64,000 nt of DNA from Dicyema japonicum (taxonomy: Eukaryota; Animalia; Dicyemida): positions 124,001 through 188,000 of the forward strand of contig RDEW01000053.1 of assembly GCA_011109175.1 (NCBI GenBank). The letters are read 5' to 3'. This document shows positions 29,100-39,099 of this stretch, in pieces (the first letter of the stretch is position 1; the number at the start of each line of letters is the position of its first letter). The notes under the pieces are model-generated. The model ran no database searches, was not told the DNA's origin, and saw only the letters and a list, made by a program, of their open reading frames with translations. Position numbers and translations under genes: made by a program.

Positions 29100-29990
29100 A
29101 TTGTAAAGAAAGGCCATATGTCTCCTGAATCGACATATCAAAAACCATTTGACAATGTTAACCACAGAGCCATAATCAGTTATCTCGGACGGGGAGCCAA
29201 AGGAACTAGTAAATTGGGTGGAAGTATACCAAAAAGGAAGAAAATCCTATGTTAGATGCGGACGATATTTTTCAAATATGATATTATTGAAGAGAGGAGT
29301 CCACAAGGATCAATTTTGAACCCTCAATTGTTTAATGTTCTAATGGCCGGTTTCCCGTCTCCGACTACACCGAGTACGAGATCTCTGATATACGCAGACG
29401 ACATGCTACTGTCTGATGTGTCGAGATCGAGCATGATCTCAGAGAGGAGACTCAATGTGTACATGGAAGAGATAAAAGACTGGTGCGGTCTTCATGGGTT
29501 AAACTGTCAGAAGAAAAATCTAGTGCAATGATGTTCCTCGGTCGGAATGGTAAAGGAAATCAGAAAGACTCCATATGCGGAATCAACATTGTGAGCTCCG
29601 TGAAGTATCTCGGAACAGCTTTTGAGAAATCTGGGAGCACATTGTGAGATTTTAAACTCAAAAGGAAAAAAGTCCACCATGCGATATTGTGCATGAGGAA
29701 ATTAAGAATCGAAACGGATATGTTTTTATTTTTTCATGTACGATCATTCCATCACTCCTTTATGGACTGGAAGGATAGTATTACAAAGAGCGTTTTATCT
29801 TGCTTCTTGAAAAATCGAGAAGAGCAGGGATCAAGATTGCCCTGCACAAAAGGCTCGACGAGAAGCTAGATGAAGATGAAAATTTGCTAGTAATGTCGAT
29901 AAGAGATGCAGCAGAAAAAAGGATGGAAAACTACTTTAAAAGAGATGCCATCATTGACTCGTATGTTGCAGCACAGAATAAACGATAAGA
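29100..29990 (+). mobile_element. 5'-truncated Jockey/CR1-like LINE RT pseudogene
   Basis: KPFDNVNH, PQGSILNPQLFNVLM, LIYADD and VKYLG motifs. The C-terminus resembles 49200-49460. Confidence 0.8.
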
Positions 29991-30379
29991 GGGGTCTGAG
30001 AGCGCAGAGAAGAGTCCAAGCGTTTGCAGAACTTGCGGCATGAGGCCAAATAACTCCCTCTTTAATTTTTTTGCTAATAAAGTTGTTAAAGTTAAAAAAA
30101 GTTAAAAGAAAAGGTATGCAGTCATTGGCATTCTGTCTCTAAGGCAACGCTTCCCGATTCGTTTTGAGTTCGCACCCCCAAAATTTTTAAAAACCAACCT
30201 CACATCCTCGATTTTAAATCTAGCGGAATTCGAATTTTATAAAAAATGGTTAGGTTCCTTGAGACTTTTCCTGCCTTTTAGTTTTAATTAATTCTTCGAA
30301 CCATGTTTTTTGTTTGTAGTGCTATTCTGAGATCTTTTTCAGAATAAGAGCGTTTCGGTAATAATTTTTTATATAGCAG

Positions 30380-31907
30380 AGATGAAAATCCAGATTCACA
30401 TAGCCAAGTTGTTGCAAATGGAACCATTCACATAGTCAAGTTGTCATTTAAATTAATGTTGCCAATAGCAACAATAGTCCATTTCAGTAATGCAATCAGG
30501 GTAGTGACGTCCCTTATTTTAGATCATCTCCCGTTGAAAGTACGCCTTCTGTGAGCAATAACTTAAACAGTTATCGACAAAGTTAATTTTTTGTACGACT
30601 AGAAAGGTCAAGAAGTTGAGTTCCTCCCAATCGAGTCTTCCATTGAACTTTACCTGAAGTGCAGACTTTGTGGAGAATTCCTAAAGTATAGGGACTTGTT
30701 GGAACACTTAAAAGTGCATGGTTCTGCTACAGTAAGCTATTTTATGAACCAGATATTGGGGATGAAGTGGAAAGAGTTCATAACCATGGAGGGGATAAAT
30801 TAATAAGCCACAGATTCAACAACATCAAATTAGAAAAAGACATTGAGCAGATATTCCTAAAGAATGGAGCTTTTTCCAACCTCAAGGAAGCGAATATAAC
30901 TTTTCGTCCAGAGATTCGGATAACTGTAGTGTTTATTTAAATTTTAGAGTCGATGTTGGCCGAATATGTCAAGTCAAATACTTCTATGTGCAACAGCATC
31001 TGGGAGATGTACCGATTGGACTCCAAAATCTTGTCACAGAGTTTCTGTAACCAAGAAACTATTCCACGGCACGGAATATGTTGTTAATGGATTTTTCGAG
31101 AGTCGATTTGGTCCTCACGCCGCCTTGTTATTTTCACAAAAGTTGGTAGACTTGGCGTCAAGGTCAACGAAGGCGGTCAATGCCCTAATATAAATTAGAT
31201 TGACGAAGCCTTCATGTGGGCTCACGGAGAGGTCGAGAAACTATGTTCTTTTGGAGTTTCCGAAGAAAGTCACCAGATTTGGTCCGGCTGTACCTATTTG
31301 ATCTCAGTGAACCAGACTAACTCAGATACCCCGATATTATTGATTTCCTACATTGGTAGAAAGTCCCATGTGAAGTCTAGGGGACATTCAGACATTGGCT
31401 GTGAGTAAACGGAAAATCAAGTTTGTCAACAACGAACACTCGTTTTTTACAAACAGAAAAGAAATGATGCGTTTGTCAGCGCACAAAACAAATTCGTTAA
31501 TTTCAGTCAGCAGAATCGCAGCCATGTCGGGAATGAAGGACCCCGGAATCCTCACCTACCCGTCGATAGTCACACCGCTAGTAGGTAGTGATGACTATTT
31601 GGAATGTTCCATAACCGCCAACAACGAGTTTTGGAAGGTTATGGTTTCCGTAAATATACGGAACGTGTTAAAGGAGGTAGTCACTAAGTATTATTGGTAG
31701 TTATACACTGAATTTGCATTCAGAAACTCTGTTAATGTCAATGAGGACCAGCATGACTCTTTCAAACCACTAAAAGAGTTCATTGATGATGAAAGAAACC
31801 GAAAAAATCTCGGAAAGTTTGTGTCGACAAGACTCGTTGAAATAGCATTCGCAGTTGGGGCTAAATTACAGACAACTGTGGTTGTGCTCATATATAACCT
31901 TGACTGA
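30380..31907 (+). CDS. C2H2 zinc finger plus PP2C/PPM-fold pseudophosphatase (5' end uncertain)
   Basis: CRLCGEFLKYRDLLEHLKVH (30660-30719), then PP2C motifs in the correct order: GFFESRFGPHAALLFSQKL, AIDEAF, SGCT, ISYIGD, NEH..NRKEMMRL, SRIAA, ITANNEFWKV, RLVEIAFAVGAKLQTTVVVL. Introns 30721-30752, 30926-30947, 31176-31198, 31356-31380, 31677-31700. Confidence 0.75.
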
Positions 31908-31949
31908 CTTTTTTACTCAAAATAAACAAAAATGTTATCACCGCTCCTC

Positions 31950-32400
31950 TGTGCCTTTAAGAGACGCCATGTGAACTGCCAGCCTCAAGAGAAACCCAGT
32001 GCTTGGTTGGCCCAAAAAAGATTGCATGCTTTCCAACTAAACTGGAGGGGTTGGCACAATCACAAATGTGAATGAACTTGTTGCTTGGAAAGGACCAGTT
32101 TTACTCCAGCTGTGTCAAGTTGATATGCCCTAATTAGACGTTAATGAACAATGACGTCAGTGGATCCGAGGCTTACGTAGTTTCCAATTAAGTTTATTCA
32201 TTGAGTTCGCACACAATAGAAGGAAACGAAGCGTTAGGTAAATCATAAGACGATAGAGACATCCTAAATCAAATGAGTTGATCTGGCCTGGATGCTTCAA
32301 GACAAGATATAAAAATTCAAGGGTTGCACCAATGTTGTAAGGTACGAATTCTAATCTCTCCCGTGTTCCCTAAAGAGACACTATTCGAAGGACTTTATAG
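31950..32400. repeat. Dispersed repeat family A, long diverged copy in the opposite orientation
   Basis: The reverse complement contains ACCCCTCCAGT...GCACTGGG...TTCACATGGCGTCTC. Confidence 0.55.
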
Positions 32401-32769
32401 CTGAAATATCTAAATCATTTTGAAAAAAAAGTTATAACCAAATTAACGAAGATTTTAAGTATTTATCCCTGAGTTGAGAAAATACCTGAGGAGAATCCGA
32501 GTGGAGTATAAGTTGAATTACTTAATGAAACATTTTTTATTAATCATTTCATTATTTGTTTGTCTTAATAAGCGGGAAATTAACTCATTTTTTCGCAAGT
32601 TCACATAACTCTCTTAATAAAGTCGGGATCACTTGATAATTGGTTTGGTTTTACCGTGATCTTAAGTTGTAAAAATTCATAAAATTTTAAATTTATTTTT
32701 AAGAGAATGCTATTTTTTATATTTTTATTTATTCGCAAAATTAATAAAAACGTTTCAAAAAACAAAAAG

Positions 32770-33030
32770 ACTAAGCCACACAGTGTGTTAGAATGTTAAA
32801 TAGTGATTACGTCCGAAGACACAACAAAGTTTTAAAATGCTTACATCTCCATCTATGCAGAGTATATGGAATCAAAAAGGCTAGAAAGTTGAAGGGGGAT
32901 TCAGTCGATTCTATCAACACAGAATGTTGAGATAAGACTAGATTCTGACTGAAACGAAAGTACAGTTCAACAAACCAGATATCTTTGTATATAATTGTAA
33001 TAGAAGTGGGGATTACATCTCGTTTTACTG
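32770..33030 (+). mobile_element. R4/Dong-like RLE fragment
   Basis: MLNSDYVRRHNKVLKCLHLHLCRVYGIKKARKLKG...KPDIFV...IEVGITS, homologous to 597-1490. Confidence 0.8.
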
Positions 33031-33349
33031 TTAATCAATATTATTATTTTCGTGGTAATTTAATATTTTAAATTTCATTTTTGCAAAATTAATTTTTAAA
33101 TTACATCAAATTGAGAGTTAGTAACTAAGTGTATGCAGAAGCCCAGATTACATGGCTATTCCTTCTCAAAATTGCGATGGACACTCGCTCGAATAGCCAA
33201 CAATGCTTGCGAAAATCTGACACTCAAATCGATCCAGAAATTCCAGCTTTTAAAGTCGGACGCCACTGCTACTTTCACAACGAGATTTTTTAACCCCATA
33301 CTTACAATCTTTGGTAAACCCCAAATCCATCGTCCAATAGTACATTAGA

Positions 33350-33640
33350 TACATTGCAGAAGAGAGGTGGAGAAGTAGGTTCTCCTTCTTCCATTTTCAT
33401 CACACGTCCTACCGTGGCAGACATAACTTCATTCTCCGACGGAAGAGTTACATAATATAAACTTCATCAGAGTATTTGGGTAGGGAAAAGGTAGGAAGAT
33501 CCCTTTCAAATACTGTGTTGTGCCAGAAAAACTCGTCACCTCACGGGTATGATCTGTTTGACAAGAGAATTGACCTTCGCTGAAAACCCCATCTTCACAA
33601 CCTTCGGATCCGATGTCAATAGAAGTTAGGGTCTGCGAGA
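33350..33640 (-). mobile_element. Decayed CRE-like RT fragment
   Basis: GSEGCEDGVFS and GEPTSPPLFC resemble GCEAAVH and GDPLSPLLFC. Homologous to 18760-19030. Confidence 0.5.
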
Positions 33641-33781
33641 AAGCCTGGATTAAACATCACTGAAATTGATTTAAATTTTAATAATAAATATTGTTTAATT
33701 TATATTAATTTTATTATAAAATTGTTTTATTTTATCTTCAAATTACTTTTTCTGTTGCACTTTTATTTTGCTAAAATATCA

Positions 33782-34874
33782 ATGTTTAATTTTGAGGATC
33801 TTTTCAGAGGAACCCTTTTTGATGTTTGTTGAATATTTAAATTTTAAGAGCAGTCAAGATTCTTTAAATAAATCAGTTACTGAACAGGAACCTGTCCCTG
33901 AGCCCACTTCCAGGCAACCCGATAGCCTTACTCGAGTATTTTCACATATTTCATCTTTATCAAACGACACCATCCAAGTGGACCGGTTATATGAATTTAG
34001 GCTTTTAAAGTTGAAAGTTCATGCCAGTCCTTGTCAACTGTCAACCAAAAAAGAGATCCTGGGATCTCCGACGTATCCAACTCAAGTGATGCCCTAAAAT
34101 CAGTGCTTGTTTGAAATCATCCTTAGACTAAACCTTCTTCCAAGGTCTCTGAAGTCTCTGAGCCTCCAAAAAAGACATCCTCATGTGTAATCTGACCTTG
34201 TTATACCAGCTGACTAAGGATGAGCTCGAGTGGTTGGTCTCCGCCGCCAAAATGGACATGGAAGCGATGAAAGCACTCCTTGCACGTCTCCCTGGTCTCC
34301 TTGATCTGCAGGTTGGTTCATTGGTCCTTTAAGCACTCCACTTATATAGAATCCATTGAATGTTACCTTCCTTGTTATTGTTAGGGGGTTAGTTGTTTGC
34401 TAACGTTGATAGTTCACTGCGGCTCACTGGGCAGCTCGTCAAAACAATGACGTCATAATTCGGTGGTTGTGGATGAACTCTGCAGACCTCAACTGCAAGA
34501 CTGTAAGCTTGGTTGTGTATTTTAGAATGTAAGAATGTGATTGATGAGTGTTTAGACGGGGTTGAGTCCCCTTCATATTGCCGTGATGGCTAAGAACTGG
34601 AAGGTCGTGAATGCCCTGACTAGGGAAGTAGGTATAGTGTGGAGTTTATGGAGAATGTGACATTCATGTGCGGGACTTTGAGGGACTAACGCCATTTGAT
34701 TACTTGGACGAGTTGGAGGATTCTGAGATAACAGGTTGCGCTGGTTGGTGTGTTGTAGACTCTCTCAACCCAAAATCACGCCCACTTGTCTGTAAGAGAT
34801 CAAAACGGTCTCTTTTTTTTCTTTTTCGAAAGAATACGTTTTGTTCTATTATGCCTTGTCATAGAAAAGAATAA
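33782..34874 (+). CDS. Ankyrin-repeat protein, sosondowah (SOWAH)-like, with microexons
   Basis: Spliced product: ...LTKDELEWLVSAAKMD..LL...LLDLQ|NPLN|G|FTAAHWAARQNN...DLNCKT|N|TGLSPLHIAV...E|CDIHVRDFEGLTPFDYL. About ten GT-AG introns of 22-38 nt. The ankyrin call is strong and the SOWAH assignment moderate. Confidence 0.82.
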
Positions 34875-35045
34875 ATTTGGACTGTTTGCTGTTATTTTCA
34901 ATAATTTTATGTTTTTTTGGTCAATCTGTCCGTCTTGGAATAGAAAAAACAAATCTGCAATATTTTGTGGACTAGAAATTAACTAAATTGTTCATCCGTT
35001 TCTTCCTCCGTCCTGGGGCTCATCTCGGCTTCTTTGAGGTTTTCA

Positions 35046-35438
35046 TTAAGGACGGTCGGTAGGGTTGTCCTTGGTCGATCTGAAACGCTGAGTGCCTAAG
35101 ACAAAGCAGGCCCTTTTAGTCATGCTCGCAGGGGTCCAGAAGAAGTATAATTCCAACTTGCCTTCAGGATCCCGTACGAAATCCCTGTGCTCTTCGTCTC
35201 TTGTAAAGAATATCGGACCGAAGTCTGGAGTGGTTCTAGAAAGACAGGATATGCCTAAGATAAACCTTCCTAGTTCATGCCATGTGCAAGTCAAAGTACC
35301 CGCCTTGTACAAGAGTATGGATTTCAAAGTCGTTGTACTTGTGGACTCTTGTATCCACATCAAGCTCTTTACGGAAAAACCAAGTTTTCTCGATTTACAG
35401 TTATTTTTCAAAGTAACGGTAATATCATACGATAGCAT
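35046..35438 (-). mobile_element. Probable Penelope-like GIY-YIG endonuclease remnant
   Basis: KSILLYK...TC...FILG...FTRDEEHRDFVR resembles the GIY-YIG pattern KSxVVYxxxC...YIG...RxxEH. Homologous to 42100-42400. Confidence 0.4.
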
Positions 35439-35480
35439 TCCACCGAATAATTTATATTATGAAATATATGCCGAGTGTAA

Positions 35481-35972
35481 ATGCTGGGAAATTGTTCGGA
35501 AGATGGTCAAGGGGGAGGAACCTGTTATTTACAATCCTACAAAGAGTCAGGAACAAATAACTCACTTTACGTCAAAAACAGCTGTTTGTATTTAAGAATT
35601 TGTCATTCTGATTATGACTATGAACCAGAAAACCTTGAAACAGTAAAGGCCATATACTCTGATGAGATAAAAGTCATCTCCCAGATTCCTTCTTATAAAT
35701 CCTTTACATTGGAGAGCATATTGGGGACCCCTAAGCCGTTAGAAAGTCTTCATGATGCGAATTTTGAGTCGAGTGAAAAGGAGGAAAAGAAACGCATAGC
35801 AAACAGATTGGCTGCTCGTCGTTGCAGACAGAAAAAAATTGATAAAATCGTCCAACTGGGGGAGAAAATAAAATACCTCGAATACCAGATAGGACAGTTA
35901 AATTTATTAGGTGAAATTTCCTCATGTCAGCTCATGGATGACTTGTACTCATCGTACTGTGACAATCAGTAA
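35481..35972 (+). CDS. bZIP transcription factor, Jun/AP-1-like
   Basis: Basic region EKKRIANRLAARRCRQKKIDKI (invariant N and R), followed by a leucine heptad L-x6-L-x6-L near the C-terminus. Confidence 0.8.
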   Translation: MLGNCSEDGQGGGTCYLQSYKESGTNNSLYVKNSCLYLRICHSDYDYEPENLETVKAIYSDEIKVISQIPSYKSFTLESILGTPKPLESLHDANFESSEKEEKKRIANRLAARRCRQKKIDKIVQLGEKIKYLEYQIGQLNLLGEISSCQLMDDLYSSYCDNQ

Positions 35973-36089
35973 CCATTTACCAAAATTTATTTTTTAATGG
36001 TGTTTATTCTCTCAAAAATAATTTAATTTTAAAGAGGGGGATCAACAATCACACACCTAAATACACTAAATAAGTTCATAACAAAAGAT

Positions 36090-37056
36090 TAGGACAGAAA
36101 AAGACGATTGTATGCTCAATTGATATCCAGAAGGCTTTTGATTCGGTTTCGAGGAAAATTATCACGTACAAAATATATTGATGCAAACCTGGAATTGTGG
36201 TTGCGAAATTTCTTGAGTGGTCGACTATGGCAATCGATGTTCTGTATCTAGACTATTAGCAAATGACGTTCCCCAAGATTCCCCATTATCTCCCCTCTTG
36301 TTTAACGTTTTGATGGATTGCCACTCCTCAGGAGGACGATTACAAATTATTAACATATGCTGATGATATAGTCATTGCCTCGAGGGATGAGAGTATTGTG
36401 TAAGCAACAAGAAGAATGCAGGACAATCTGAATAAATTAAGTTTATGGCTTTGGGAAATCAATTGATTGCTAGCCCGGAGAAGTCCGTGTTGACCCTATT
36501 CACGACAAACAGAAGAGTATCAATTGACGTCACACTAGATGGGAAGATTATCCCGCAAAACAAATACCATAAATCCTGGGAGTTACCTTTGACACCTTCT
36601 TAACCTTTACAAAACATGTCGAAAACATGTTATTGACTTGTACGAAAAAAATCAACTTCCTGAAGGCGTTCTTGGGAAACCTAAGAGACAAAAAAGATCT
36701 GAGTGGTCTGGATGTCATATACAAACAGTTCATCGAGGCTACAATAGGATACGCATGTAATGTCTGGGGATCTAACCTTGCTGCAACGAATTTCGAATCT
36801 GCAACATTCAAGTGATCGCAGCAAACCTACTAAGGAAATATTCCCGTGTGGAAAATCTATCCAGAAACTAGAAAATATGATAGAGAACAGTGTCCCTGCG
36901 AAGGACTTGAGTATGCGGCCCCCGTCCATATCGGAAATGCGCAGGAACGCAGTCGGAACACCGAGAAAAAATGAGGAGACTTTTGAGGGAGGATGGGATC
37001 ACCTGAAATTTGTTATTTTGGATATGACGGTGGCTTTTTTTGGTTCAATAAAATAA
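36090..37056 (+). mobile_element. 5'-truncated LINE RT pseudogene (Jockey/I-like)
   Basis: LDIQKAFDSV, PQDSPLSPLLFNV, LTYADD, KSVLTLFT, LGVTFD, YKQFI...IGYACNVW. The 3' end reads EGGWDHLKF. Confidence 0.85.
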
Positions 37057-38679
37057 ACCAGCCAGCCAAACAGTTAGTTTAGCGGATGGTAAAAGTACAT
37101 CCAAATGGACCGAATAATGGACTCGGGAGGCATTGGATACATAAATTTTCGAAACCAAAAAGTTTCAAAAAAACCAAATTGTTAATGACAATATTAATAG
37201 AGTGGTTAACATTATCTGTCAAGTGTTGAAGTAAATTACACTTGTCCTATATTGAATAGAAGACATTCGTTCAATAACGTGGTGTCATGTGATCCATCTT
37301 TTTAGTGGAGTTCAGTGCCAGGACGGCATTAAATTCATTTGCTTTCCTTCTCTTCACTTGATCACTCCTTAGAGGGGTTCTCACAACCGTGATTCTGGAT
37401 GGACTTGTCTTTTGAAGGAATTATCTTTGCATAAATGTGACCGTGGAAACACTTGTTTCATGTTGACTTGTTTTCCAGTGTATCTGGTCCTTTAATTCGG
37501 AGGCGGAGTTTACAGGAGGTCTGCATCCCAGTATTTGTGTGACCCTCGGATTAAAAATGGTGAAACTTAGTGCCAGAACAAATGACACTGCACCGAAAGT
37601 GGACATAATAAACAATACTTGCCGTCTTTTCTCTGTCTAATCTGCAGCAGAGCAAGTCGCTATTCTATGCTTGGATACCTTGGGTGCTACAAGCTAACAA
37701 TAAAGACCACACAATATGGCAAATTAGTCAAGCCCTTCATACCTTGGGTAATGCAGAAGGCGGAAGGAGCTCTCCTTTTGATCTGTCCTGGACCTATCTA
37801 ACAGGATAAATTTCTATGCCACTTGAATCAGCATGTGTTGGAGAGTCATCCTCAGGATCCAAAGGTCGTCGCGTCTAACAGCTGCCTCTTGTCTTTTAAA
37901 GCTACCAGGGTAGTCGATGATAATAATCAAGATGCCTAGACTCCACCTTCTCTACTTTGCACTTCTTGTCTTCGGATCACATCCAACCGAACTGAAAAAA
38001 AGGAACCGCAAATCAAGAGAAATTACTCTAAATACGAAACTGATAACATGGCGACTGCACTGGTGAGTCACCTGATTATTCAGGGTCAAAAAAGACAAGC
38101 CAGATCTACGTCTTAAGTGAACAATAAGATCATGGTCAGAGACATCTGGGGAGGCCTGCATACGCTCTCCAGCAACGACAAAGTTCTTTTACCAACAAAA
38201 GAAATACTCAAGCACAAAAAAACATCCGCCTGCCGCAGTGGATCTACGCGAAACGAAAATTGGAAGGAAATTCCACATTTGACAACCACCACAGGTTATA
38301 TACGATCTGCTATTTCATCATTCCCAGGAAGCCTCACGGACAGGTCCCAGCAAACAAAAGGCCTGACGGGACAACTCTTCCCATGAGAAAGTGGTTGATA
38401 CCTGCTTTGGACGTCATGACTGCAACTAACCCAGAATCAGGCCGAGACTTTAAAAATGAAGAAATGACAATGTATCGGTGGACAGTTTATTTTTGAGCCA
38501 GTTGCCATGGAATCGTCAGAAATCAAAAGAAACAGGTAAACTGACCTTGCTACAAAGAATCGAGTCCCTTAACGATAGAATAAAAATGAACTGGCTCATT
38601 GAGAACGCATTTCCTTGGAAATCGTCAGAGGAAATGCGTTCTCAATTCTGAGAGAGTCAGTGATTGTCAACTTTGTTTT

Positions 38680-38900
38680 TGTCAATTTAATAACCAGAAA
38701 AGCACTGTCATAACTATAATGAAAAAAAATTCAGGTGATCCCAGCCTCCCTCAGCAGTCTTCGCATGCTCGGACTTGAAGGAAGTGCTTTCCATGGAACT
38801 CCTATGGACGGTTGACTAATGTTCCTTTTTGGATATAATTTGTGGTTATATGGTGAAACGCATGACGCACGCTAACAATTCAAACTCTCGTAGCCAAAAA
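38680..38900 (-). mobile_element. 3' fragment of the LINE family at 36090
   Basis: KSEHAKTAEGGWDHLNF. Nearly the same DNA as 41200-41450, and related to 25840-25930. Confidence 0.65.
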
Positions 38901-39099
38901 GGAAGAGAAAAAACAGAAGAAACAAACAAGAATCTTCAATTTAAGTATTCACATAGCACCACACTAACGTTGGCTCCACATGGCATAGTTGCCAACGAAT
39001 AAATTTAGTTTTGAATGGAAAGCTTTCATTTAGACAAATATTGGGTTCTTTAAAGGTTTAAAAAGTAAAAGAGAAATGCAGAATATTGGCTTTCCATAA

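Follow-up and report, generated by a model that had tools for sequence, protein, structure and literature searches.

In an ankyrin-repeat gene of Dicyema japonicum, two stretches of 51 and 53 nt, each starting with GT and ending with AG, raise the question of whether each is removed from the transcript as one intron or holds two nano-introns separated by an exon of a single codon. The gene was analyzed within 64,000 nt of contig RDEW01000053.1, hereafter the window. A first-pass annotation of this DNA had described a 12-nt exon and the codons GGG and AAT, set between introns of 38, 23, 25, 23, and 27 nt, and all these elements, including the GT and AG ends of the introns, are present in the sequence where it had placed them. 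According to our analysis, a parse with two putative 3-nt exons and one 12-nt exon between introns of 23-27 nt is the best-supported reading of the sequence and a plausible one, on the probable side of the scale. Similarly, it appears somewhat probable that GGG and AAT would be predominantly included in the mRNA.

The ankyrin-repeat gene and its surroundings

The window has a GC content of approximately 0.37, and the D. japonicum genome shows a GC content of 36.7% and a mean intron length of 38 bp (PMC6736024). Introns shorter than 30 nt are known, among animals, only in myxobolids and D. japonicum (PMC13644364). The nano-introns of dicyemids and myxobolids range between 20 and 30 nt, with splice signals reduced down to GTa...AG and weakly conserved A residues (PMC2222250, PMC6736024, PMC6543705, PMC13644364), which in D. 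japonicum are located farther from the AG in the longer introns (PMC13644364). Dicyema introns validated by cDNA are very uniform in length, with 26.2 +/- 1.9 nt (n=16) (PMC2222250); dicyemid intron lengths based on annotation show a tail, with one third of them at 30 nt or more (PMC6543705). The locus is best explained, as far as it can be read from the sequence, as an intron-dense ankyrin-repeat gene within the genome of a nano-intron animal. Its approximate coding span is 33822-34874 in the forward strand, where the preferred model gives a stop-free spliced ORF encoding about 270 aa. The model is ambiguous in the upstream half of the gene, and three upstream introns have no unique solution.

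Four sequencing runs, which belong to one sample of a single study, were analyzed on 32000-37900. They showed a flat depth across the gene and the spacer and zero splice joints inside the gene, and therefore the four runs behave as DNA. Depth was single-copy over 33773-35545, with repeats flanking both sides. The high-copy repeats found on either side of the ankyrin gene (32788-32984, 33379-33772, and 35940-37121) showed a word depth 20- to 400-fold above the single-copy level in the four runs.

Pfam analysis of the neighboring ORFs showed a bZIP domain and a reverse-transcriptase fragment and nothing else, and no Rfam match was found on 30000-39000. The bZIP domain (PF00170, E=2e-9) is encoded by an ORF of 163 aa, directly downstream of the ankyrin gene and in the forward strand (35481-35969); a homologue of this ORF, sought at E<=0.001 in a library of 5.8 billion proteins, was not found, and the sequence itself is not on record. 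The reverse transcriptase match (RVT_1, E=2.2e-7) is located in an ORF fragment of the forward strand (29256-29528), which probably belongs to a retroelement.

The N-terminal ORF of the ankyrin gene (33768-34085, forward strand) encodes 106 aa. It matched no Pfam family at E<=1, and a phmmer search of 1.84 billion representative proteins gave 0 matches. Divergence is very high in dicyemid proteins, and this ORF is either highly divergent or else not coding in the form modeled. Since neither the N-terminal ORF nor the bZIP ORF was matched, the protein libraries seem to be without entries from this genome. The two-repeat layout of the gene and its F-T-A-x-H-W-A-A motif may recall SOWAH, a tentative assignment; the SOWAH family has its own N-terminal domain ahead of two ankyrin repeats.

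Exon-intron structure around the putative microexons

All stop-free GT-AG paths were enumerated across both microexon regions. The preferred model, which was picked for typical intron size, contains nine introns of 22-27 nt: the four which flank the two putative single-codon exons, and five others of 22-26 nt. All nine show GT and AG ends.

The first intron of the region had been placed at 34312-34349 in the first-pass annotation. A GT..AG unit of 38 nt does exist there; however, an intron of 26 nt which uses a donor further downstream (34324-34349, forward strand) is more typical in size. The first intron can thus also be of 26 nt, which fits the local size better; this shorter version has GT and AG ends and an A at +17, and adds VGSL to the exon, while the 38-nt version (donor 34312) has no A at +15 to +17. 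Downstream is the 12-nt exon (34350-34361, forward strand), which encodes NPLN in frame and is preceded by AG and followed by GT. The next intron, of 23 nt (34362-34384, forward strand), is T-rich, shows GT and AG ends and an A at +16, and contains no TGC motif. It is followed by the putative 3-nt exon GGG (34385-34387, forward strand), which encodes a Gly located at position 2 of the Ank HMM and two residues ahead of the T in the T-x-x-H motif. The intron downstream of GGG has 25 nt (34388-34412, forward strand), GT and AG ends, a CTAAC sequence at +13 to +17, and an A at +15/+16.

The exon of 90 nt at 34413-34502 (forward strand) matches PF00023 and encodes positions 3-32 of ankyrin repeat 1. 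Between this exon and the second repeat, an intron of 23 nt (34503-34525, forward strand), which begins with a GTAAG donor, has an A at +17 and a TTTTAG acceptor, and lacks a TGC motif, leads to the putative 3-nt exon AAT (34526-34528, forward strand), whose Asn would take Ank position 33 and give a period of 33 residues. The intron downstream of AAT has 27 nt in the assembly (34529-34555, forward strand), a GTAAG donor, and an A at +16. At position 34542, within this intron, the contigs of the four DNA runs all lack, at full depth, one TGA of TGATGA; this 3-nt indel between the assembly and the sequenced sample makes the intron 24 nt long in the sample. An alternative location for AAT is 34534-34536; its flanking introns would then be 31 and 19 nt long and the mRNA identical. 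The 8-mers AATGTAAG and AATGTGAT adjoin at 34526-34541, and hence the placements of 23 + 27 nt and of 31 + 19 nt insert the same AAT codon.

Ankyrin repeat 2 is encoded by an exon of 76 nt (34556-34631, forward strand), which matches PF00023 and has its donor at 34632. The intron that follows (34632-34653, forward strand; 22 nt) is the sole GT-AG solution which leaves VVNALTRE and CDIHVRDFEGLT in frame. The next exon (34654-34734, forward strand) encodes a partial third repeat (CDIHVRDFEGLTPFDYL...) with a weak Ank_5 match (E=0.04). Downstream, a doubtful intron of 24 nt (34735-34758, forward strand) has GT and AG ends, a length multiple of 3 and a stop-free sequence which is G/T-rich like that of the introns, with no internal A. 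This unit may be retained or coding, because the ORF 34668-34874 runs straight through it. Across 34033-34759, the introns of the model are T/G-rich and C-poor (T 0.38, C 0.12) in comparison to the exons (T 0.28, C 0.22), and this strand-specific contrast in T and C could aid the finding of nano-introns.

Skipping of the two codons would leave GT..AG stretches of 51 and 53 nt, both in frame. These are the only long units that the gene needs, and both split cleanly. The first-pass annotation had considered them about twice as long as the introns typical in the window; the lengths are as given, and the comparison was verified within this gene and from the literature. A window-wide histogram of intron lengths derived from ORF flanks showed no peak, with noise too high, and a dynamic-programming gene finder based on codon usage could not distinguish between the strands, with training data too scant.

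Ankyrin register, splice signals, and competing readings

The exons were scored singly against Pfam. The exon 34413-34502 matched PF00023 with E=7.8e-5 and 23.2 bits (cut-off 21.1), and its residues 1-30 aligned with positions 3-32 of the 33 profile positions. The second exon, scored over 34556-34627, reached E=5e-4 and 20.7 bits, just under the cut-off of 21.1; its residues 2-21 aligned with positions 2-21, and its first residue corresponds to position 1. The Pfam coordinates of these flanking exons therefore leave open exactly positions 1-2 before repeat 1 and position 33 between the two exons. When the microexons are included, N-G fills positions 1-2 and N fills position 33. Because the exon downstream of GGG begins at position 3, GGG corresponds to the conserved Gly at Ank position 2, as the first-pass annotation had proposed from the protein motif. 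First repeats in ankyrin stacks are often without this Gly. In the protein atlas, the 30-aa exon was related to generic ankyrin clusters only.

The distance from the T of repeat 1 to the S of repeat 2 is 33 residues with AAT and 32 without it. Designed consensus ankyrin proteins, in PDB alignments, show a period of 33 residues (chain positions 39, 72, and 105) and five residues that separate N-x-K from the following T; in this gene, the latter distance is five residues with AAT and four without it. Repeat 2 has 34 residues in the sole canonical parse, which uses the intron 34632-34653, so that not every repeat of the protein keeps strictly to 33 residues, and the argument from the period is good and not absolute.

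The four introns around the single-codon exons are of 23, 25, 23, and 27 nt, with 24 nt for the last one in the DNA contigs, and fall within the range of approximately 20-30 nt typical of the genus. Every one of the nine introns in the preferred model, among them the four next to the microexons, contains an A at +16 or +17, against a chance expectation estimated at about 0.41 per intron. This A is a candidate branch point, and its position suggests a branch A at a roughly fixed distance from the donor, since it agrees with the drift of the A away from the AG in longer introns (PMC13644364). Both AG|GGG|GT and AG|AAT|GT keep the frame and introduce no stop. Furthermore, in the 53-mer, TTTTAG and 3 nt are immediately followed by a full GTAAG, which forms the second donor. 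Close to the 3' end of the 51-mer is a good CTAAC, and in its center a G-run.

In shuffled sequences, AG-NNN-GT with both halves of at least 18 nt was obtained by chance in 6-7% of the shuffles of the 51-mer and in 14-16% of those of the 53-mer, with a joint frequency of about 1%. Since chance splits reach 6-16% per stretch, the motif is weak evidence when taken by itself, and the case for the microexons lies in its coincidence with the ankyrin register. When the window was scanned for AG-NNN-GT between tandem nano-introns, a high background of about 7 matches per strand was obtained for k=3, with no further convincing case.

These results bear on whether each stretch might instead be one intron of 51 or 53 nt with an accidental AG-NNN-GT, giving a protein without the Gly and with a first repeat of 32 residues, a possibility that we consider rather unlikely. 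It would draw on the chance splits found in the shuffles, on the survival of the frame after skipping, and on a repeat 2 which already departs from 33 residues; lengths of 51-53 nt are possible when one third of the predicted dicyemid introns have at least 30 nt (PMC6543705) and their mean is 38 nt (PMC6736024). Furthermore, the CTAAC near the 3' end of the 51-mer would allow its removal as one unit, and the central G-run could be an intronic element, as G triplets are enhancers in small introns (PMC8831610). However, both long units would then have to split by chance into sizes typical of the genus, which is what the joint value of about 1% measures, and both skipped codons would have to fall exactly on the open profile positions; in addition, the introns validated by cDNA are uniform in length (PMC2222250), and the full GTAAG of the second donor would be left unused. 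Production of both forms, by competition between the near and the far acceptor, would generate isoforms which differ by one residue, with an outcome like that of NAGNAG splicing. Both sets of splice signals are present, inclusion and skipping are both in frame and so nonsense-mediated decay could not act as a filter, and the inclusion of plant microexons is variable (PMC8831610); nevertheless, a fixed and short distance between donor and branch point should make the near acceptor dominate, and we consider it quite unlikely that the two forms are made.

Other stop-free GT-AG paths exist: an exon of 42 nt at 34350-34391 (NPLNVTFLVIVRGL) followed by an intron of 21 nt (34392-34412), a size typical of these introns; or donors at 34512 or 34515, with introns of 44 or 41 nt, which add VSL or VSLV. 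With these paths, T-rich and intron-like sequence becomes coding, hydrophobic residues are inserted in the ankyrin loop and the Gly is out of register, which makes them very improbable. A gene copy in decay or without transcription, whose splice pattern would be free of selection, seems an extremely improbable reading of the locus: high-copy repeats do flank it, the N-terminal ORF has no homologue, and the C-terminal tail looks unnatural; however, the frame is intact across about nine introns, the ankyrin repeats are well formed, and the depth is single-copy.

Proposed splicing of putative single-codon exons between nano-introns

With the microexon parse as the preferred reading, each stretch would consist of two neighboring ordinary nano-introns (23 + 25 nt in the first stretch; 23 + 27 nt, or 23 + 24 nt in the sample, in the second) around a single-codon exon. 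Each nano-intron has its own donor, an A that could serve as branch point, and an in-frame AG close by, and would be recognized singly by intron definition without special machinery. In a genome with introns of about 25 nt, recognition would have to run across the intron rather than across the exon. At the donor, contacts include the last three bases of the exon and the first six of the intron, and at the acceptor, the AG and the next base (U1, U5, U2AF). With an acceptor and the next donor only 3 nt apart, these factors could not occupy both sites at once, so that the two introns around the codon would be removed sequentially. After the first splice the codon would be joined to an exon of normal size, which would make the second splice an ordinary one. 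The order of removal is not fixed by the sequence; co-transcriptional splicing would favor the upstream intron first. Beyond this, the dicyemid spliceosome might pick branch point and acceptor by their distance from the donor (an A approximately 16 nt away, followed by an AG close by), and process longer GT..AG stretches as tandem nano-introns; we regard such a rule as unlikely.

The neuronal microexons of vertebrates and insects which depend on SRRM3/4 are similar to the putative exons described here in that they preserve the frame, have 3-27 nt and add one or few residues. SRRM3/4-type microexons are located in long introns and need an upstream enhancer containing UGC. Assignment of GGG and AAT to this type was rejected, since the introns upstream of both have 23 nt, neither contains TGC, and the space is too small for such elements.

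The introns of Coprinopsis cinerea are about twice as long as those which flank the putative microexons. The long-read annotation of this fungus contains 27 exons of 3 nt, 57 of 2 nt, and 13 of 1 nt (PMC12230235). What both cases share is the small size of the internal exons, at most 3 nt, and an annotation that breaks if they are missed (PMC12230235); in contrast, C. cinerea is a mushroom-forming fungus whose tiny exons are documented by long reads, while the exons described here are predicted and their introns, of 23-27 nt, are near the lower limit known in animals. Plant microexons have 1-15 nt, are conserved, coding, and usually included, often escape annotation, and were proven by RNA-seq and by sequencing of RT-PCR products (PMC8831610). 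Their small size is thought to prevent assembly on the two flanking introns at the same time; the introns compete, so that one is detained and spliced later (PMC8831610), and a competitive and sequential splicing of this kind is the one proposed here. Nevertheless, the plant cases are RNA-proven, and the introns around them have a greater length and additional signals. In C. elegans, the inclusion of microexons with very short flanking introns (49-58 nt) is PRP-40-independent, which the authors credit to default intron definition (PMC8378409). These microexons are likewise too small for exon definition (PMC8378409); however, they have up to 27 nt, their introns are twice as long as here, and they are under neuronal regulation.

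Recursive splice sites, intrasplicing, and stwintrons share with the microexon parse an acceptor which adjoins a donor and a stepwise removal (PMC13149111, PMC4482092, PMC6616335). They differ from it because recursive sites have a zero-length exon and very long introns, and stwintrons have an interrupted splice signal, whereas each intron is complete here. A recursive splice site was rejected, since three coding bases are kept between AG and GT and the total is only 51-53 nt. We found no mention of single-codon exons between nano-introns in PMC2222250, PMC6736024, PMC6543705, or PMC13644364, and a literature search for dicyemids and microexons together found none.

Intron definition and the exons of 3 nt or less already known suffice to account for the arrangement, and the undescribed ordered or compact splicing mode which the first-pass annotation had suggested is unnecessary (PMC8378409, PMC8831610, PMC12230235). 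Of its overall interpretation, the gene structure stands as the best-supported parse, read from DNA, and the special mode of splicing is not needed. If confirmed, the two codons would be an extreme case of tiny exons already documented, and not a new splicing mode; if transcripts skip both, the gene merely has two slightly long introns.

If transcripts confirm the microexon parse, no exon-intron arrangement yet described in an animal would be as compact as these two full introns and an exon in 51 nt. If true, the two introns around a one-codon exon would be sufficient to define it, with no need of enhancers, and an upper bound would be set on the exon-side RNA that a spliceosome needs at a splice site. 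If the distance-from-donor reading is true as well, single-codon or tiny exons would be common genome-wide and systematically unannotated, and would form part of the tail of 'long' intron lengths. To our knowledge, 3-nt exons cannot be placed by gene predictors or by spliced aligners. Consequently, proteins of nano-intron genomes, such as those of dicyemids and myxobolids, may be mis-annotated by single residues, and some of the introns annotated as apparently long in these genomes could hold missed exons.
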